The position numbers and the translations under genes were made by a program. Under the pieces are notes generated by a model that saw only the letters and a list, made by a program, of their open reading frames with translations, did not search any database and was not told the origin of the DNA. Positions 39,050-51,055 of a DNA stretch of 64,000 nt are shown here, in pieces. How positions within the stretch are numbered: the first letter of the stretch is position 1; each line of letters starts with the position of its first letter. The stretch comes from Trichoplax adhaerens (lineage: Eukaryota; Animalia; Placozoa): assembly GCF_000150275.1 (NCBI RefSeq), contig NW_002060943.1, positions 2,384,462 through 2,448,461 of the forward strand, read 5' to 3'.

Positions 39050-39850
39050 ATAGGATATCATTAAGCACTATTTCGTGACACTGTACCTTAGGAACTACTA
39101 TATTGGTATAGTGATTAAAACAAGATCAAATACTGGATAACTACTATAAGTATAGTTATAAAATTTCATCATTTATCAAACTGACATTAGTGGCTTAGGT
39201 TAATAGTGAGTAGGAGCAATTTGGACTCTTTTTTTAAACTACAAAACGAAGGAGTCTTTTGAAAGGACTATTTTATGATATTATACCTTAGTAACTACTA
39301 TAAATTTATTAGTATAGCGATTAAAATAACATCAAATGCTGGATAACTATTATAAGCATAATTAATCAATTATCCAACTGACATTAGTAGCTTAGGCTAC
39401 AAGTGAGTAGGAGCAATCTGAACTTTTTAAGAGAGCAATTAATTAATTATTAGGGAAGCTGGTAAGTGATTTAGTTGAAGGATAGTTTTACGTAGATTGG
39501 GTACATTGGGAACTGGAATCAAACATGACAATCGTTCACCGTTTTTATATCTCATGACTGTTAATCTAAACTTTTAGTTGCAATAGGAGGATCATTAAAG
39601 AGACTATTTCGTGATATTGTACCTTAGTAACTACTATGCATTTATTTGTACAGTGATTAAAACAACATCAAATACTGGATGACTATTATGAGCATAATTA
39701 ATTAATCACTTATTATCAAACTGACAAAATCGGCTTGGACTGCAAACGAGTAGCGACAATTTGGACTCTTTAGTAAGTAAATTAAGAGAGCATTTATTAG
39801 CGAAGCTGGAAAGTAGCTTGGTTGAAGGATAGTTTCAAGCAGATTGTATA
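39050..39850. repeat. Three degenerate direct copies of a 200-330-bp unit upstream of the clathrin-like gene
   Basis: ctattt(c/t)(g/a)tga...accttag(g/t)aactactat...gattaaaa...atcaaat(a/g)ctggat...aactgaca...gagtag...caat(t/c)tg recurs near 39068, 39268 and 39604. Confidence 0.85.
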
Positions 39851-39855
39851 CGTTG

Positions 39856-42800
39856 ATGATGGATCAAATAGCACCATTCAAGACTAAATTATATCTCCAG
39901 GTAAATGTAACAGGATAATACCCTACAAGGCAGAATAATACCTATTGGTCATTTTGTGATATTTTTTCTACATGGATTATACGTGATTAACACGACGATT
40001 GCTTCGCTATCGATTGATCATTTTGCATATCTAATTTTGATATCATAGCTAAAGGATCAGGGAATACTTGCAAAAGATGTTGGATTTAACGCATTAACTA
40101 TACCATCGGATAGGTTTATATGTGCTCGTCAGCAAACGGAACCTAATCAATCGCAGTTCATTGTCCTTGATTTAGCTTCACCAATGCAAAAAATTCCATT
40201 AATTTGTCCTACATTGACTGAGTCCGCTATTATGAATCCGGTGATTAAAGTCATTGCAATTAAAGGTAAAATGACAGAGCTACGTTGAAATTGTTTCCCT
40301 TTATCCATAACAATAACAAACGATACATCTTTTAAGCCGACTATTTTCTAGATTTTAGTCAAAAATTCACCTTAAACGATATATCTCCTAGTCTAATATT
40401 ACGGTGCATATACATCACTTACCTTGAGAATGGTTGTCTTTCTTTATTTTAGCTGTCAGGTACTCTATATTAATAGATCTTTCAAGTTGATTCTATTTAT
40501 TTGCATGTCTTTAACTTAATAGCTTTTATTCAATAGGATTTTTATTTCCATTCTATGACATTAAATGCGATTTTTTAAGCTATTTGTCAAATTATTTTAT
40601 ACAAGATTATTCTTCAGCTTAGCGGCAATGCTAACACCTAGAGAAATAGACCATAAAAACAAACATTTAATGAACTTAAATACTTGGCACAGATCTTTCT
40701 GAGTAGGTTATGATTAACATTTTCATCTGCTCCCATTTTGTAGAGGGTCAAAAGCTTCAAACATTTGATTTAGAAATGAAAATTTGTTTGAAAACGATTT
40801 TCCTCCAGGAATATACGACATTCTGGAAGTGGATTTCTGTTAATGTTATAGCCTTAGTCACTCAAACAAAAGTATATCACTGGTCTATGGAAGGTAAAGT
40901 ACTGTAGTAGCAAAATCGGGAATTAACAAGCCTATTTCTCGATTGCCATCTGCAAATTTTAAACGAAAAAGTAGCGAATAAAAATATTTTACTTCGATTT
41001 GCTGCTTTTGATACAAAATTTGATTTTATACGCATTTTAATACAATCTATAACATGAAAGAAAAGGATAAATCGACTACTGCCGCATATTTTATGACATG
41101 ATGGAACTCCATCCATACTACTATTATAGCAATTTAAGTAAATTATCCTTTAGAGATGGCGGCCTAAAATCTTCTATCTCATCAATCATTGCTGTAATTT
41201 AAACGATATTCAGGGAATACCCAACTGAATGAAATCCATGCTAGGCATCAAGCCTTAAACGGTTACCAAATCATTAATTATCACGTCGATCATACTAAAA
41301 AGTGGTCATTATTGATTGGTATTAGAGTGCAAGTGAGTTAACTACTCGCTTTTTCTACATTTTAAGTCATTATTGAAACCATGAACGCTATTTTGACATC
41401 ATGTATTAACGTATGGAGAACTTGATTGAACTTAAGTTATTTTTCGGTGCTATTAGAATCATCGAGTTCTTGGTGTTCTACAACTTTACAATACCGAAAC
41501 GAAAATAAGTCAATTAATTGAAGGACATGTAGCAGCTTTTGCTTCCGTAAAACTGGGGGATAATTATGAACCTTCGAATCTATTAATCATTGGTACTCGT
41601 CGTCTCAAAGGTGGAACGGTAATAAAAGATTACGAAAACGAACTAGATTTTAAAAGATTATAACTGCATTTATATACGCTTAGCCATCTCTATTTTTCAT
41701 AAAATGTCATCAATCAATTCTAATTACCATGATAGCTACGCATTTTGGAGATTGGAGATCCACCTCTTAACAATGAACCATTCCAGGAACAGACATTGGA
41801 ACTACTTTTTCCTTCAGAAATTCAAAATGACTTTCCCGTCTGTCTTCAGGTCAGTTTTATGGGATTAGTTTAGTGCAATTGGAAAGTTGCTGCAGTGATC
41901 ATGCTTCCCAAGAATATTTTGATATTGTTCTTTACTATTTTTATCAACATGCGGAAAGAAGCTTAGGGACTGGAGAAACAAAATGATATTTCTATTTTCT
42001 TCTTCAGATAAACGAAAAACATGGTCTAATATATCTAATTACTAAATATAGTTATCTCCATGTGTGCACTATTGAATCTATGCAGTGTATTTATATGGGT
42101 AAGTTAAGCAACGCAAATACCTTTGCTGCAACGTTAGATACATCATCTCATGGCATTTTAAGTGTCGACGATAATGGGCAGGTAAAATTGGCTAGATGAT
42201 TTTTTGAGTGCCTTGCTTACTTGAGAATGATTTTAACTAACTTGGGTGTAAACTTAATTACTTTTTTTCATTCCTTTTCAATACTGATTCTATATCAGGT
42301 TTTTTCTACCAGCATGAATACAGAAAATATCGTGCCCTACATTATCAATACCCTCCAAAATAAGGCCCTGGCCAGAAAGGTGGCACTCCGTTGCAATTTA
42401 AGTGGTGCTGAAGATCTTTTTATCGAGGAATTTAATCAACTATTTGACAGTGGTGAATATGTAGCAGCTGCAAAGATTGCAGTCTCAGCGCCAAAGGTTG
42501 GCTTTCTAATTATCTATAATTTTAACGTTTAGAAACTATGCATGCGAACAAGTATCAAGTTGATGAGAATTTTGACAGATGTTAATAATTTACTGTTTTA
42601 TAGCGCTCTCCAGTTCTTCATCAATGCTGGAGTATTCTTTACATTCTTACTATTCTTGCTGATATAAGTAGAAAGTATAGTTATAGTATATAGTATATCA
42701 TCTATAATATAGTATACGTACTATGAGTATCGAATTGACGAGAATTTTGACAGATATTAGTTTAACTATTTTGTAGTGCTCTCTAGTTCTTCATCGTTGC

Positions 42801-44627
42801 TAGAGTATTCTTCAAGTTCTTACTATTCTTATTGATATGAGTATAAGTATAATCATAGCGCAAAAAGATCTAACATAAAGCATCCACACGTAGTAGTATT
42901 CAAGCATTAATAATTTCATATACACTTTAAAACACGTTTGTACACTGTACTAATACTCATGTAGAAGGCAAGTCAATGTCTTGTTTAAGGCGACTGATTT
43001 ACTAATATTCAAGTCAAATTTTCACATTCTTGCTCGTAATATGGATTAGGGCGTCTTAAGAACATCACAAACTATTCAAAGATTTCAACAGCATATTCCA
43101 AGAACAACTACCGCTTTAGCGATATATTTTGATGTCTTATTAAGGCAAGGCAAGCTGAATCGTTATGAATCACTTGAATTATCCAAGCGATTGATTCATA
43201 CTGGCAAGAATCAGGCTTTAGAACATTGGCTGAAACAAGCAAAGGTAAACCAGTATTTCGGTTACTCTTATTTCACTTTCCATTATGAAGAATTTCATGA
43301 ATTAAAATTTTCGTATTCATTCTAAATCACCACGAAACACAATTGCATTCGAGCAATAAATCTGACATCTATAGTGCGAACGTACGCCAAGTTTTAAAGC
43401 TATGTTTCGTATCTTTCTTTTTAAAATGAATTTAATGCAACATATCTTAAATATCTAGTCTCTCATTTTAACATTTATGAGCTATTCTTATTTCAATTGA
43501 GTTTTGTTGCAGATTCTAAATTCTTTCTAAAATATTTTTAATAGCTTGAAAATAGCGAAGAATTGGGAGATTTACTTAGGTCATCGAATCCCGTTACTGC
43601 ATCTTCCATTTATCTTGCTATTCAAAAACCTAAAAAAGTAATTATTAATGCCTTGTTTCGGCTTATAATTGCAATAATTAGAAAGTAATGCAGTAAAACA
43701 TCTCTCTACGGGATAATTAATGTTACGGTATTCTAATGTTTTCAGGCAGTGGAATGCTTTCTTGATGTTGAAAATGAGAAATTGGATCAATATGATGATA
43801 CAGTCTTCAACGTAGGATATAAGAGTCACTAATTATTTTTTAAAGAATTCTTGCTGTCGATATAATGTAATATTCAATTTTGCCTGCTATTTTTTTAGAT
43901 TTGCTACAGCAATAGACTATTTGATTGCTTAGCTAGTTATATTATGAAGCGCTGCAAACTTGACCTATGGGCAAAAGTGTTAAGCAACAGTAATGAATGG
44001 AGGCAGGAATTGATTGATCAATTATTTCCCGTTGCCATTACGAGGCAGCATAATAGCGACGAAATTACTATAATCATCAGAGCATTGATTGCAGCTAATT
44101 TGCACTATGAAGTAATTAAAATTATAGGGAAACTAATCAAAGACAATTCAATATATGCTGAGAACGAAACACTGCAGAATTTGCTGATTTTAACAGCTAT
44201 GAAAGTTCGTCATCAATATTTATTGGACTTTATTACAAACCTTCAACATTACGATCACATTGAAATTGCCACAGTTGCTACAAGAAATCGTTTCTATCAT
44301 GAGGCTTTTATAGTATTAAAAAAGTTAAAGAGCAAGGCAATAGCAATTCAGGTCTTAATCAATAATGAATCAAGTCTAGCGTATGCTTATCAGTTTGCAG
44401 AGTATTGTCAAGAGCCAGTAGTGTGGAGCATTTTAGGCAAGGCTCAACTAGACTCTCATCTGATTAAGGAAGCTATCGATTCTTACATTAAAGCTAAGGA
44501 TGTGTCTGCGTATAAAAAAATTGTTTCAGAGGCTCAAAAAGCAGGTCATTTCCAACATTTGCAACGTTATCTACGTATGGCTGAGCTAAATACTTTCGAT
44601 GCATTGAAAGAGGACTTAATGTATTAA
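39856..44627 (+). CDS. CLTC: Divergent, shortened clathrin heavy chain-like paralogue, about 753 aa: terminal beta-propeller, linker and a knee-region segment; no proximal leg or trimerisation domain
   Basis: Twelve GT-AG-joined exons (39856-39900, 40049-40265, 40744-40893, 41214-41332, 41457-41618, 41736-41849, 42008-42181, 42299-42496, 43050-43244, 43545-43637, 43746-43811, 43899-44627) total 2262 nt without stops. Clathrin motifs: SAIMNP, FWKWIS, VYHWSMEG, QIINY, IEGH, QNDFPV, NLSGAEDLF, SEELGDL, LQNLLILTA, EPVVWSILGKAQL, KEAIDSYIKA. Confidence 0.9.
42560..42855. repeat. Direct duplication of about 170 bp in intron 8 of the clathrin-like gene
   Basis: gagaattttgacagat...ctct(c)(c/t)agttcttcatc...gagtattctt...ttcttactattctt occurs near 42565 and 42740. 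Confidence 0.8.
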
Positions 44628-45369
44628 TCAATCCGATAATATTGGAAGCTAAAATTCTATTGATGATAATTTAACTGGAGCTATGATAGTTCTGATAATA
44701 TTTATGCTCGTATAAAATATCAAAAATTATGATGCAATTGAATTTCATTCTTAGTAGAAATTATTCAGAGATAATGGAAATTTATGCATATGTTGCGTTC
44801 AATCCATATATACTCTTATGATGCCAGTTAAATGTAGCGATAGGTTTCAAACATCCTTCTGCTGGCATTGGATGGAGTTATAAATAAATATTACATTGCT
44901 ATTTATTGGTTGTATTAGTAATGCCATGTAACCTCTTGTTCTTCAATGTCTACTGAAAGGTGGTATCTACTTATAATTTAGATTTACTAGGATAACACGT
45001 TAATCTAGGATGCATATTTTGATTTTGATAATTTGACATAATGGTACATATCAGAAATGTAAATTGATGAATGTGATAACGTAATGTGTCAAATTTGCAG
45101 TACCGTATTTATTCGTTACTGTATATTAATCCGTTTAATATCGGCTATAATATATTAGCCTATACATACTACCTACAAAATGGAAAAGATTTTGGGTAAG
45201 ATATTGAATGTCTACTTTGATTGTGATCATCGGAGATAATTTTATGAAGGGTGTATAATTGTTATAGAATTGATCGCTACATTATATTACACAATTTACT
45301 ATACTTATTTTTTGAAAAAATCTGTTATATTTAATCTATTTCAGTTAGCACAGTGTCAACTAGATTATC

Positions 45370-47030
45370 CGCGTATACAGTAAGCTATTACATTAATTAG
45401 CGAGAATAACTTTCTTCTTTATAGATATTCTATGCTTAAAAGATGACTAGACAATATACAAGATATGAAAAGATTATTAAATATTAAATATAGCATCAAC
45501 CTAAATATTCGCATATCAGCTACTGCATTAATCAGGGAGAAAAACTTCTACTTTAATATACAATCTGTAGTTAAAAGGTGTCTATACAAAATAAAAGATA
45601 TGTTTACTTACATATCAGCACTTTAAATAATGAACGAAAGTAATTTCGATTTTAACATGCGCGTATAGTACAATCCGTACTCGAAAATATGAAAAAGATG
45701 ATCAATTATTGAATATAACAACAACTAAAATGCCTACTCGCATATAAACTACTGTATTAATTACCGGTGATATCTTTCAGTTTAATTTACAATCTATACT
45801 TTAGAGATGATTAGATTATAAACGAAAAATGAAAAAGATAATTAAATATTGAAAATAATTTCGACTAGAATACCTGCTGACATATCAATTACAGGATTAA
45901 TCACCACGAATGGCTTTTATTTTATTATATAATCTACATTTTAGAGATGACTAAATGAATTATATGCCTGAGTAAAACAGGAGGATTAAATGAATATATA
46001 ATATCATCGATTATAATATCATCGATTAGAGTACTCGCATATAATCTACGGTATTTATTACTAAGGATATCTTCTATCTTAATATACAATCTATACTGTG
46101 AGGAGGACTACGCAATATGCAAGCTACGTGCATGAAAAAAATAATTAAATATTGAACGAATATCGACTAGGATACTTGAATATCAGCTTGTAGCGAAGTG
46201 ACGTTAAGTCATATTAATGCTGATAGTAAGTTGTACGGATGTGTAATAAATTAGTGAGTACATGATGATACGATCAACCGGAGTGCGTACTAAAATTTAG
46301 ACTCGTGTTACGTACAAGACAAACTTAGGACCTAGCATAATAGCGCAAGCTATTACACAGCTATCGTATTAATTGCTGAGGATATCCTCTATCTTAATAT
46401 GCAATCTATTCTTTAAGAAGGACTACTCAACATACGAGCTACGCATATGAAAGAGAATAATTAAATATTGCATAGGATATCGACTAGAATACTCGCATAT
46501 CAGCTACCGTATTTATTACTGAAAACATCTTTTATCTTAAAGTACAATCTATACTTTAAGGAGGACTACGCAGTATAAGAGATACGAAAAAATAATGAAA
46601 TATTGAATAGATTATCGATTAGAATAATCAGATATCAGCTACAGTATTTATTTCAGGTGATATCTTTTATCTTAATATACAGTCTATGCTTTATGGAGGA
46701 CTACTCAATATTTGAGACAGGAAAAAAGGATTAAATTTTAAATAGCAAATCGACTAGAATAATCAGATATCGTCTACTGCATTGATTACCAAAGCTATCT
46801 TTTATCTTGATATACAGTCTATTCTTAAGGAGGACTGCTTAATATACAAGTTAAGCGCATGAAAAGAATAACTAAATACTGAATAGAATATCGACTAGAA
46901 AACTCGGATATCAGCTACTTTATTACCAAAGATATCTTCATCTTAATACTAGATACTGATAGCCTATGCTTGAAAGACGACTACGCTACACCATATACAA
47001 GATATGAAAAGGATGATTAAATATAGATGG
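45370..47030. repeat. Degenerate tandem repeat of about 120-140 bp, about 12 copies
   Basis: Recurring atatcagctac..tatt..ttac...gatatc.t.tatcttaatataca(a/g)tctat.ctt...gaggactac...aattaaatattgaat...atcgactagaatactcgc. Confidence 0.88.
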
Positions 47031-48784
47031 ATATCCATAATGAGGAGGTAGTGACGAAATGATTACCATGGTGAATTAAACTGACGTAATGATGAAGGCT
47101 TTGTCAGCTAAGCTGGGCCGCTCCTATTCTCTTTTCTCTTCTTCATCATTATCAAGTGTATGACAATCAAAAAAATGAAATAACTTAATTAATATAGGGC
47201 TGGAAATAAACTTAGCGCATTAACTTTGCTGTCCTAATCTTATACTATATTAGTATAGCTTACAATGACGCATAAGCTACTATAAATAGCGATAAATTAT
47301 TTATACAGCGAAGTTAATTTGTTATATGCTTGGCAAATGAAAGTTGTTATTCGACATTTCAATCATTTCTTGGATTAAATAACCTCATGATTTTCATTTG
47401 ATTCAGAATCTTTCGTTTTACATCCTATTCAAAGGTAGGTAGACCGTTAAAGTTTACTTTATTACGCTGCTTTTCTAATAATTTCGTTTCGAAATTATTG
47501 GTAGTAAATCATTTTTCGACTGATTACTAAAGTTACTTTGTGGCAACTGTTCAATAGCTGAGTTGTCTTGATTCTTCGATATTGATCACAAGAAGTCAAT
47601 AAATATGACTTGGTTTATTTTGAGAGAAAATGAAGTTGCTATTTGCGTCTAAATAGATGGAATGAGACAGAAGCATCATTTTTATCCTGCTATGTTTTGA
47701 GAATGATATCTTGATTGAAAGGATGTAATCTATTTTTTTATTTTGACTCATACTGATATTGGATATACTGTACTTTTATAAAGTTAAATTATAATCACTA
47801 TGGAATACTGTCTTGATCGATGTCATACCGTAAAATTTTTTAGAATGAAGGTGTTCTAGTTTTTGTTTAGCATGAGTCAAAGTACGCCATCGAATTAAAG
47901 TCCAGTTTCTTTACATTTAAATAAATCCATCCATTCTCGTTCGAATAACAATTGAGGAGAGGAATCGAAAGAATTTTCTACTCCAAGTAGAAATAGTGGC
48001 AATTAAAAATACCATCACTAATGACACAATTTTGATTTAAAATACTTATTTCTACAATCAATTGTTTACTTCAATTTGATATGGTTGTAATCTCAGTATT
48101 CTTACATTTATTTCACAAGCTACAGATATTTTGTTTATCAAATTGAGCTAATAATGGGTTAAAGGCTACTCTAAAAGCTCTAATATCCGAAAGATATACT
48201 CTAGATTGATGAAGAAAGTAGTATTCGCTAGTATTCCCTGACAGAAGAATGCTTGCCAATGTTATAGCACATACCAGCACGTTATTAAAGCTGCTAATCT
48301 TTGATTTTGTCAGGGAACAGGAATGATATTTTTCATTCCTTTTTTTAACGATAGTAAAGTGTGTTAAGAATTCCATCATTTATTCTTGATGTGTCGTTAA
48401 TACTGACTAAAACATGTTTAATTCAGCTTTCTGTCACATAATATAATAAGGATACATTTTATGTTATCCTAATGTCAGTCATTCTTTTATGAGCACGGAA
48501 GGACTTTATTAACTAAAGCTTTTTTGATTAGTAAGGACGTTATCACCAGGCTATCAAGTATGAATATCTTTGTATACGACATCTTAAATAATCTTGTGCA
48601 AGTCGATGCTATTGATTACTGATTGTTTAACTAATGTACAAGAACGAATCAACAAGACATTGAATTACAAATAGTAGAAATTCATAATTCACTTATAGTA
48701 TTAATGCTATGTTAGGAATTGTTGTGCGCCAAAAAATCGCCAAATTTAATTTTATACTGTTCTTTTTTGTGCAACAGATTCAAT

Positions 48785-51055
48785 ATGCTCCATTTCCGTT
48801 GCCTGTGCTTGATTATCGCTGCGATATTAGCGATATTTTATCCAATATCGGTAATTGGAAATCGACCAATGTTGGACCAATTCAAGAAATACGATGTGAT
48901 CAATTATGATGCTGAAGAATTTGCTGAACATCATGAAAGATCACGCCGTAGTCCATCCGCTCATACCATGTTAGAATTTCACGCATATCACAGACATTTC
49001 CAATTACGACTTAAACGGGATACAAGTTTATACACCGATGATTTTATGATCGAATCCGGTAATGGCCAACCGGTCGAATTTGACATGCATAATATCGTTT
49101 CTGGACACTTGGTTGACGATGCAAAATCACTTGTGCATGGGACGATAGTCGATGGCATCTTTCAAGGTAAAATTTATACCGGAGAAGAACATCCTGAACA
49201 ATATTATATCGAACCATCGACTCGTTATTTCTCCAAAGACCAGCCTTTCCATTCCATTGTCTATCGACGATCGGATGTTCGAGTCAAGAAAAGCTATCAA
49301 GTGGGTACATGTGGTTTAGATGACAAGGAAAATATTCGTATGAGTGATATATTACAAAGTTGGGAACATTATGGACAAGCTTTAGATACCAAAAGAATTC
49401 CATCGATGTTTCAAAATCAACCATCTCATTCTAAGAGGAATAAACGAGCACCACCAACTAGAAATACTTGTCAGCTCTTGGTACAAGCAGATCATACCTT
49501 TACCACCTATATGGGTAGTAAAGAACAGGCTATCGCTGCTTTAAATGGTTATCTTCAGGCAGTCAACAAAATTTACGAAGTAATTGATTTTGATGGCGAT
49601 TCATCAGCTGATGGTATCGGATTTATCGTTCGTAGGATGAAAATTAATACAACAAGTGATGCCAGCCAGCCTAATAACCCATTTGCTCCAAGTAATATCG
49701 GTGTATCAAGCTATTTGGATATTACTTCTACTGCTAATCATGATCCCTACTGCTTAGCTTACACCTTTGCTGATCGTGATTTCGATAATGGCGTCCTGGG
49801 TTTAGCTTGGGTTGGTAGTGCAACGGGTAATGCTGGTATTTGTGCTAAGAATAGCGCCTATAAGGGGCAAAAAATGTCTTTAAATGCTGGTATTGTGACT
49901 ATTTTAAACTATGGCACAAGGGTTAGTACAGCCGTGACAGAAGTTACATTTGCCCATGAGCTAGGCCATAATTTTGGGTCGCAACATGATCCTACGACTA
50001 ATACACAATGTGCGCCTGGCTCGCCTCAAGGCAATTATATTATGTATCCACAAGCAACTACAGGCCGAGATCCTAACAACAAGCAATTTTCAAGTTGTAG
50101 TAAAAACTATATGCAACCTGTCATTAATGCTAAAGGAATTAGTAGCAGTGGTTGTTTTGTAAATCGAGCTACTTCTATATGTGGCAATGGGGTCGTTGAA
50201 GGCAATGAACAGTGTGATTGTGGTTATCGATCGGATTGCCAAGATAACTGTTGCAATGCTCCTTATGATAATCCATCTCAAGAGCCTGCTGGTTATCAAG
50301 CATGTACCCTTAAAGCAGGCTCTGTTTGTGGCCAAAGCTCTGGCATTTGTTGCAATCCTACAAATTGCCGATACTATGAATCAAGTGATAATCAGTTATG
50401 CACAGTATCGACTGAATGCAGCCAAAATGCTTACTGCAATGGTAGCCGCTATCAGGATAAATGTCCAACACCGGCATCGAAACCAGATGGAACATCATGT
50501 CGTAAGGGGAGTAATGTATGTAGCAATGGTGATTGTGATGGATCGATATGTTTAGCTGCTGATTTAGCCAGTTGTGCTTGTACTACTCAAGCCGATTATT
50601 GTAATACATGTTGTAAATCTGGTAATACTTGTGTTTCAAGTAAGACGATTAGTGCATTAGCCAATTTTAGCGTTCAACAAGCACCTGGCTCTTCCTGTAA
50701 CAACTTCCAAGGCTATTGCGATGTATTTGGTAAATGCCGTGCTGTTAATGAAAATGGACCGCTAACGAAATTAACCAATTTATTATTCTCGGCAGAAGGT
50801 ATAAGAAATATGTTGGATTGGATGAAACAATATCCATGGGCGGTTGCACTAATTATTGCTGGTTTTATAATCTTGATGGCCTTATTTGTCAAGTTATGCA
50901 GCCGAGCTACACCAAGTGATAATCCAAAATTTAGCTCAAGGGTATCAACACCGCGACGAGTTGATGTTGCTCCAACTGGTCATAGTCAAGAAATGTCTGA
51001 TCATCATTATTATGAGCAAGAGGATCGTTACGATTATAATAAAAGGCGATATTAA
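48785..51055 (+). CDS. ADAM10: ADAM10/Kuzbanian metalloprotease-disintegrin, about 756 aa, intronless CDS
   Basis: Signal peptide from MLHFRCL; prodomain HFQLRLKRDTSL...YYIEP; furin site RNKR; YCLAYTFADRDFDNGVLGLAWVG; zinc motif HELGHNFGSQHD; Met-turn YIMY; disintegrin CGNGVVEGNEQCDCG; CNNFQGYCDVFGKCR; TM helix. Confidence 0.96.
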   Translation: MLHFRCLCLIIAAILAIFYPISVIGNRPMLDQFKKYDVINYDAEEFAEHHERSRRSPSAHTMLEFHAYHRHFQLRLKRDTSLYTDDFMIESGNGQPVEFDMHNIVSGHLVDDAKSLVHGTIVDGIFQGKIYTGEEHPEQYYIEPSTRYFSKDQPFHSIVYRRSDVRVKKSYQVGTCGLDDKENIRMSDILQSWEHYGQALDTKRIPSMFQNQPSHSKRNKRAPPTRNTCQLLVQADHTFTTYMGSKEQAIAALNGYLQAVNKIYEVIDFDGDSSADGIGFIVRRMKINTTSDASQPNNPFAPSNIGVSSYLDITSTANHDPYCLAYTFADRDFDNGVLGLAWVGSATGNAGICAKNSAYKGQKMSLNAGIVTILNYGTRVSTAVTEVTFAHELGHNFGSQHDPTTNTQCAPGSPQGNYIMYPQATTGRDPNNKQFSSCSKNYMQPVINAKGISSSGCFVNRATSICGNGVVEGNEQCDCGYRSDCQDNCCNAPYDNPSQEPAGYQACTLKAGSVCGQSSGICCNPTNCRYYESSDNQLCTVSTECSQNAYCNGSRYQDKCPTPASKPDGTSCRKGSNVCSNGDCDGSICLAADLASCACTTQADYCNTCCKSGNTCVSSKTISALANFSVQQAPGSSCNNFQGYCDVFGKCRAVNENGPLTKLTNLLFSAEGIRNMLDWMKQYPWAVALIIAGFIILMALFVKLCSRATPSDNPKFSSRVSTPRRVDVAPTGHSQEMSDHHYYEQEDRYDYNKRRY

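Follow-up and report, generated by a model that had tools for sequence, protein, structure and literature searches.

The window analysed here is a 64,000-nucleotide stretch of the Trichoplax adhaerens genome (contig NW_002060943.1 of assembly GCF_000150275.1, positions 2,384,462 to 2,448,461, forward strand). At positions 39856-44627 its forward strand contains a 12-exon gene for a shortened, diverged paralogue of the clathrin heavy chain (CHC), which we call mini-clathrin. Joining the 12 segments by script gives a 2262-nt open reading frame (ORF) of 753 codons plus a TAA stop at 44625-44627, with GT..AG borders at all 11 introns and no internal stops. An in-frame stop at 39823-39825 precedes the first ATG at 39856. 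The 753-residue joined model, assembled from window coordinates, was compared by local alignment, and database and structure tools were run exon by exon. Contigs of four sequencing runs (X1, X5, X6 and X10) were placed on window 39600-45500. The features of the gene are listed below, with residues numbered after mammalian CHC; L011 is a contig from a relative described further on.

39763-39855 (+): 5' untranslated region (UTR), minimum extent; the transcript contigs of X10 and X5 begin at 39763 and 39766
39856-39900 (+): exon 1, residues 1-15, start of the head propeller; joint 39900/40049 in transcript contigs; mapped by extending the exon 2 alignment
40049-40265 (+): exon 2, CHC 15-84, propeller; F27 kept; intron position common to the canonical gene
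40744-40893 (+): exon 3, CHC 85-134, clathrin-box groove
41214-41332 (+): exon 4, CHC ~135-173, W-box and arrestin-box residues
41457-41618 (+): exon 5, CHC 174-227, arrestin-box residues
41736-41849 (+): exon 6, CHC ~228-265, propeller
42008-42181 (+): exon 7, CHC ~266-323, propeller
42299-42496 (+): exon 8, end of the propeller and linker (Clathrin-link, Clathrin_H_link); orthologous exon in L011, 66% identity
43050-43244 (+): exon 9, linker, second half of Clathrin_H_link; also in L011
43545-43637 (+): exon 10, linker, CHC 457-487
43746-43811 (+): exon 11, 22-codon fusion exon with the deletion junction: CHC 488-492, about 9 new residues, CHC 925-932
43899-44627 (+): exon 12, 242 codons and TAA, CHC 933 to ~1174: end of the third clathrin heavy chain repeat (CHCR3), complete CHCR4, start of CHCR5
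44628-44937 (+): 3' UTR, minimum extent, from unspliced transcript contigs crossing the stop; candidate AATAAA at 44883-44888

Runs X5, X6 and X10 come from three studies with two species labels, and X10 is recorded as RNA-seq. Every intron (11/11) is seen in their contigs as a GT..AG joint at the modelled position, including the two that flank exon 11 (43637/43746 and 43811/43899), and no alternative splice joints are listed among the contigs on window 39600-45500. Transcript contigs at 43899-44729, 44092-44786 and 44538-44894 cross the stop codon unspliced and a further contig lies at 44700-44937; the transcript contigs contain no further splice downstream of the stop up to 45500. The mini-clathrin gene is real, spliced and expressed; the evidence consists of contigs, from which transcript ends and expression level are not readable. 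Contigs of three runs also extend at 44900-45475, past the candidate AATAAA, and could stem from an extended 3' UTR, from read-through or from another transcript that is not annotated, their strand not being readable from contigs.

Run X1 is DNA-like: its contigs are unspliced, have a flat depth near 100 and differ from the window by about 0.5-0.6%. Because this independent assembly is collinear with the window over 43305-44234, with the same exon 10-11-12 arrangement, no exons have been collapsed out of the sequence there. An earlier note on this DNA had described an intact, diverged CHC paralogue of 12 exons with an in-frame internal deletion within or at the end of exon 11, and had placed the joints on either side of that exon and the stop at 44627. 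This description is borne out, the joints and the unspliced read across the stop being present in transcript contigs from three studies.

Clathrin heavy chains rank with the best-conserved proteins of eukaryotes, and mini-clathrin can be numbered against the mammalian chain through searches of solved structures. Exon 2 corresponds to CHC residues 16-83, exon 3 to 85-133, exon 4 to 141-173, exon 5 to 175-226, exon 10 to 457-487 and exon 12 to 933-1164, the last running onward to about 1174. Read in this way, the protein consists of mammalian CHC 1-492, about 9 new residues and then CHC 925 to about 1174. Homology to the terminal-domain propeller is given by exons 2-5, which match solved CHC structures at residues 16-226 (E values from 1e-12 to 3e-4); exon 2 has in addition a weak propeller-repeat match in Pfam, and exons 2-7 are 45-57% identical to the canonical gene of the same genome. 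The linker is recognised above curated Pfam cut-offs as PF09268 Clathrin-link (24.9 bits) and PF13838 Clathrin_H_link (42.3 bits in exon 8 and 27.9 bits in exon 9). Exon 12 contains one complete CHCR (PF00637, E 7.9e-19, 68.2 bits), and its AlphaFold2 model, with a mean predicted local distance difference test score (pLDDT) of 89.4, has 16 helices that keep up the zigzag to the C-terminus. A weak TPR_COPA_B match (E 0.016) lies below the cut-off. The predicted product is a seven-bladed head propeller followed by the linker zigzag and one complete CHCR with its flanks.

CHC 493-924 and 1175-1675 are absent from the protein, which has thereby lost its ankle and proximal leg, the greater part of the distal leg, the trimerisation domain and the motif for uncoating. 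Of the seven consecutive CHCRs only CHCR4 is whole, with the end of CHCR3 before it and the start of CHCR5 after it, and there is one PF00637 match here versus six at the canonical locus. In CHC the proximal leg (about 1267-1522) is where light chains bind, the C-terminal domain (about 1550-1675) is required for trimerisation, and uncoating by Hsc70 depends on the QLMLT motif at the C-terminus. No match to canonical residues beyond about 1174, and with them the light-chain-binding proximal leg, was found anywhere in the 64-kb window. Neither the C-terminal trimerisation domain nor a QLMLT-type Hsc70 motif is present in the protein or downstream of the stop to 64000, and the remaining 19 kb downstream contain no proximal-leg- or hub-like sequence on either strand. 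Of the 617 residues in the canonical large exon, only the first 243 have a match in the window, and the C-terminal part, with a QLMIT motif, is encoded by this genome's canonical gene. The earlier note was right that the light-chain-binding leg, the trimerisation domain and the uncoating motif are missing and that no downstream exons up to 64000 supply the leg or the trimerisation domain. Its residue numbers were close but needed adjustment: the N-terminal part ends at about 492 and not 495, the second part starts at 925 (933 for exon 12) and the protein ends at about 1174 and not 1185.

A scan of the genome (105.6 Mb, 1414 contigs) found CHC repeats or the CHC linker at two loci only, the mini-clathrin gene and a canonical CHC gene on the minus strand of contig C1393 at about 124-133 kb, where all six canonical PF00637 matches lie. 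The canonical protein is about 81% identical to bird CHC; mini-clathrin is 48.5% identical to the canonical protein over 711 residues. Exons 2-10 each align to a canonical exon flanked by AG/GT at the same codon positions, the sizes of exons 3-8 and 10 are equal to the canonical ones (49, 39, 54, 38, 58, 66 and 31 codons), and the acceptor of exon 12 coincides exactly with a canonical intron. Because intron positions and exon sizes match, the duplication took place at the DNA level, and mini-clathrin is, as judged from gene structure, a duplicate of the intron-containing canonical gene. Exon 11 is without a whole-exon counterpart: its first 5 codons match the start of the canonical exon that follows the exon-10 equivalent (mammalian 488-492), and its last 8 match the final codons of the canonical exon located just before the exon-12 equivalent (mammalian 925-932). 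After the duplication, an in-frame deletion of CHC 493-924 ran from inside one exon to inside another, leaving about 9 new codons, and the gene was truncated inside the large exon, after about CHC 1174.

Relatives were sought with exon 12, by an exhaustive profile-free search and then by a word-indexed search. The exhaustive search returned one close cluster (P0001, 63% identity), all other matches being at most about 50% identical and covering part of the exon only; the word-indexed search added a relative at 64% identity (P0151). The contigs of these two relatives are genomic and AT-rich: L011, from the Logan assembly of a public run, covers exons 8-12, and L012, an ENA metagenome scaffold, covers exons 11-12. 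Both have the same intron positions and the same 22-codon fusion exon as the window gene, with stops 11 and 17 codons beyond that of the window. They are 80% identical to each other, their similarity ends about 25-35 bp past the stop codons, and no synteny was found downstream of the stop between the window and either of them. JGI metagenome contigs, scanned with the three-sequence mini-clathrin alignment, yielded no relative. The mini-specific motifs are conserved in all three lineages, and the deletion junction was already fixed when these lineages diverged.

A maximum-likelihood tree of the exon-12 region (250 columns), built with labelled animal, fungal and plant CHC fragments, unites the three mini-clathrin sequences in one clade (support 100/100), sister to the canonical CHC of the same genome (95/92) and inside the animals (99/98). 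The mini-clathrin clade has a stem of 1.1 substitutions per site, against a canonical branch of almost no length. The tree speaks for a duplication specific to this lineage, with a burst of change after it.

Two short proteins, from Rotaria socialis (P0002, 635 aa) and Pneumocystis canis (P0086, 436 aa), were considered as further mini-clathrins and rejected as canonical-type sequences. Both have the CHC propeller joined directly to the CHCR4 region, and they are 74% and 54% identical, respectively, to the canonical gene over the matched stretch. P0002 groups with another rotifer CHC on the tree, and the matched stretch of P0086 is too short for a tree. They are probably gene-model artefacts produced by exon skipping.

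Selection was assessed from the ratio of non-synonymous to synonymous substitution rates (dN/dS), calculated by the Nei-Gojobori method on exons 11 and 12. The window gene gives dN 0.248 and dS 1.74 against L011, and dN 0.249 and dS 1.69 against L012; between L011 and L012 the values are 0.132 and 0.648. The resulting ratio is about 0.14-0.20, dS being saturated in the deeper pairs, and is not near the value of 1 that, along with a lack of expression, would have spoken against the earlier note. Among near-identical strains, 18 coding differences are shown, 10 synonymous and 8 non-synonymous (7 and 3 in the head and linker). The corresponding polymorphism ratio (pN/pS) is near 0.2, a figure based on small numbers, with six differences unlisted and about four non-synonymous sites to each synonymous one. 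Taken together, these values indicate purifying selection along the whole gene. The gene does not look like a pseudogene either, with its 11 introns at parental positions, no stops and a dN/dS of 0.14-0.20.

The head domain of clathrin binds peptides at four sites, and the residues whose mutation disrupts this binding are listed in PMC5182127; by that list, 7/7 critical residues of three sites (Q89, F91, Q152, I154, W164, L183 and Q192) are kept in mini-clathrin. At the 48.5% background identity the chance of retaining all seven is about 0.6% by our own arithmetic, which assumes independence. The sites compare as follows.

Clathrin box: Q89, F91 and K96 kept; T87 changed to K and K98 to C
W box: Q152, I154, F27 and I170 kept; no change found
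Arrestin box: W164, L183, Q192 and I194 kept; R188 changed to T, S185 to N, F216 to L, I231 to L and V233 to I
Royle box: Q14 kept; F9 changed to T, E11 to L, Q16 to K and N17 to D

By alignment, the tested key residues are retained in three of the four peptide-binding sites of the head. This is the one piece of support found for the roles that the earlier note put forward, which were an adaptor-sequestering regulator, a lattice cap or a new coat subunit.

Because CHC residues 1175-1675, with the trimerisation domain, are absent, mini-clathrin should be unable to form triskelia by the known route; we infer that on its own it can build neither triskelia nor cages and is most likely a monomer. 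Its predicted form is a monomeric rod about 410 residues long with the adaptor-binding propeller at one end. Because the critical residues of three sites are kept, the protein would probably be recruited by clathrin's own short adaptor motifs, those read by the clathrin box, the W box and the arrestin box. Once recruited, it could modulate coat formation either as a competitor for adaptor motifs or as an extra leg in coats that is bound to adaptors but does not polymerise. We propose that mini-clathrin, a conserved and selectively maintained CHC paralogue, acts as a non-trimerising, adaptor-binding modulator of clathrin coats, and we hold this proposal with a confidence evenly poised between acceptance and doubt.

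Several points weigh against the modulator proposal. The altered Royle box and the changes at T87, K98 and R188 may have altered adaptor binding. The long stem of the clade and the many mini-specific conserved residues of exon 12 would fit a new function apart from adaptor competition. The head domain can be compared in this genome only, since the contigs of the relatives cover exons 8-12 and 11-12, and the tree includes no cnidarian, sponge or ctenophore CHC.

One such new function would be that of a neofunctionalised propeller-solenoid scaffold outside clathrin coats, for example a partner-specific trafficking, tethering or cytoskeletal adaptor, which would work through its diverged head and through a new surface of the short solenoid. 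The very fast change after duplication (a stem of 1.1 and 48.5% identity to the parent) followed by purifying selection is in keeping with such a protein, as are the motifs kept in three lineages and the loss of the Royle box. The retention of all seven critical residues at a chance of about 0.6% counts against it, and we regard this scaffold as unlikely, if worth serious attention.

The constraint on exon 12 bears on another alternative. Its CHC 925-1174 segment might dock on canonical legs at the distal-leg positions of neighbouring triskelia, so that mini-clathrin would decorate, cap or edge-stabilise lattices and add head domains to them, rather than simply compete for adaptors. Of the blocks available, exon 12 is under the strongest constraint (dN/dS 0.14-0.20); it keeps many canonical-invariant residues (37 invariant columns) and has a confident CHCR fold. 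Recombinant head-plus-distal-leg fragments can reportedly join hub fragments in basket assembly, which also counts for this alternative. When exon 12 was modelled in complex with the canonical gene's proximal leg (L001:706-1779:-), the score was 0.00, which is no answer and counts neither way. Against docking stand the many mini-specific substitutions and the loss of the entire ankle together with three quarters of the distal leg, without which cage geometry is not reproducible; we consider a lattice subunit or cap decidedly unlikely. It is quite improbable that mini-clathrin serves as a single-legged working coat component that co-assembles with triskelia or adaptors to build or terminate lattices.

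That the gene is a non-functional remnant or an artefact, be it a partial duplicate in decay, a collapse in the assembly or a wrong gene model with exons elsewhere, is largely refuted and scarcely credible. Short CHC models do exist in databases as probable annotation artefacts (the Rotaria and Pneumocystis proteins above), but here an open frame of 753 codons persists at 48.5% identity to the parent, every splice site is intact and in use, and independent DNA-like contigs are collinear with the window. The same architecture occurs in two diverged relatives with dN/dS far below 1, no CHC-like sequence follows downstream and the genome has two CHC loci only.

Mini-clathrin can be set beside several known systems. 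Canonical CHCs of the CLTC/CHC17 type, including the C1393 copy, have a homologous propeller, linker and CHCR zigzag, and the C1393 copy is the direct parent gene; mini-clathrin differs from them in having one complete CHCR instead of seven and in lacking CHC 493-924 and 1175-1675. The vertebrate paralogue CHC22 (CLTCL1) is likewise a CHC duplicate confined to one lineage and retained for a specialised role. CHC22 is a full-length, triskelion-forming chain, whereas mini-clathrin is less than half as long and has no trimerisation through the canonical domain. The two duplications are independent, as horse CHC2 groups on the tree with other animal CHCs and not with the mini-clathrin clade. Fragments of CHC made in the laboratory comprise the head (1-363 or 1-494), the head plus distal leg (1-1074) and the hub (1074-1675). 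By analogy with the head-containing fragments, a comparison made from general knowledge, mini-clathrin would be expected to be monomeric and to bind adaptors. It overlaps the hub fragment by only about 100 residues (1074-1174) and, unlike any laboratory fragment, is a natural, conserved gene product with an internal deletion found in no engineered construct. Protocoatomer-type proteins (COPI alpha/beta', Sec31, and Vps11/18/39/41 with their CHCR) likewise combine one N-terminal beta-propeller with a short alpha-solenoid and are similar in size to mini-clathrin with its roughly 750 residues. In mini-clathrin, however, this architecture is secondary and arose by deletion from a full CHC within one animal lineage, and there is no specific sequence relationship beyond the CHCR fold.

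Full-text literature searches for clathrin heavy chain together with Trichoplax, placozoa or a missing trimerization domain returned nothing relevant. To our knowledge, CHCs have been described only as full-length trimerising proteins. An automatic annotation model of the mini-clathrin gene may well exist in public databases.

A short repeated element with similar translations occurs three times just upstream of the gene (about 39054-39137, 39263-39343 and 39599-39679), and contigs of the DNA-like run X1 have joints at 39600-39846 that go back or skip relative to the window, which suggests that the copy number or arrangement of repeats differs among strains. Intron 8 (553 bp) contains a direct duplication of about 120 bp (about 42545-42665 and 42730-42850), and X1 contigs break nearby at 42862/42934. 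The next recognisable gene downstream, at 48719-51055 (+), is a single open frame of 778 codons for an ADAM10-like metalloprotease with Reprolysin-type M12B, disintegrin and ADAM10 cysteine-rich domains. Between the mini-clathrin and metalloprotease genes lie tandem repeats at 45682-45950 (140 bp, 1.9 copies) and 46390-46918 (135 bp, 3.8 copies), with 75% matches.

Mini-clathrin amounts to a natural deletion experiment on the clathrin heavy chain: the ankle, proximal leg and hub have been lost, yet the gene has been kept by purifying selection in at least three diverged lineages and is transcribed. Although apparently restricted to a non-model lineage, it asks what a clathrin head domain and a short leg do on their own, and offers a testable handle on adaptor competition, on lattice capping and on the minimal functional unit of a clathrin leg. 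Deletion at the level of exons is also seen here as a way in which coat proteins of the propeller-solenoid type can be remodelled. If mini-clathrin were, improbable as this is, a working coat component in its own right, clathrin coats would be regulated in a novel way, or built in a simpler form, in an animal lineage that was among the first to branch off.

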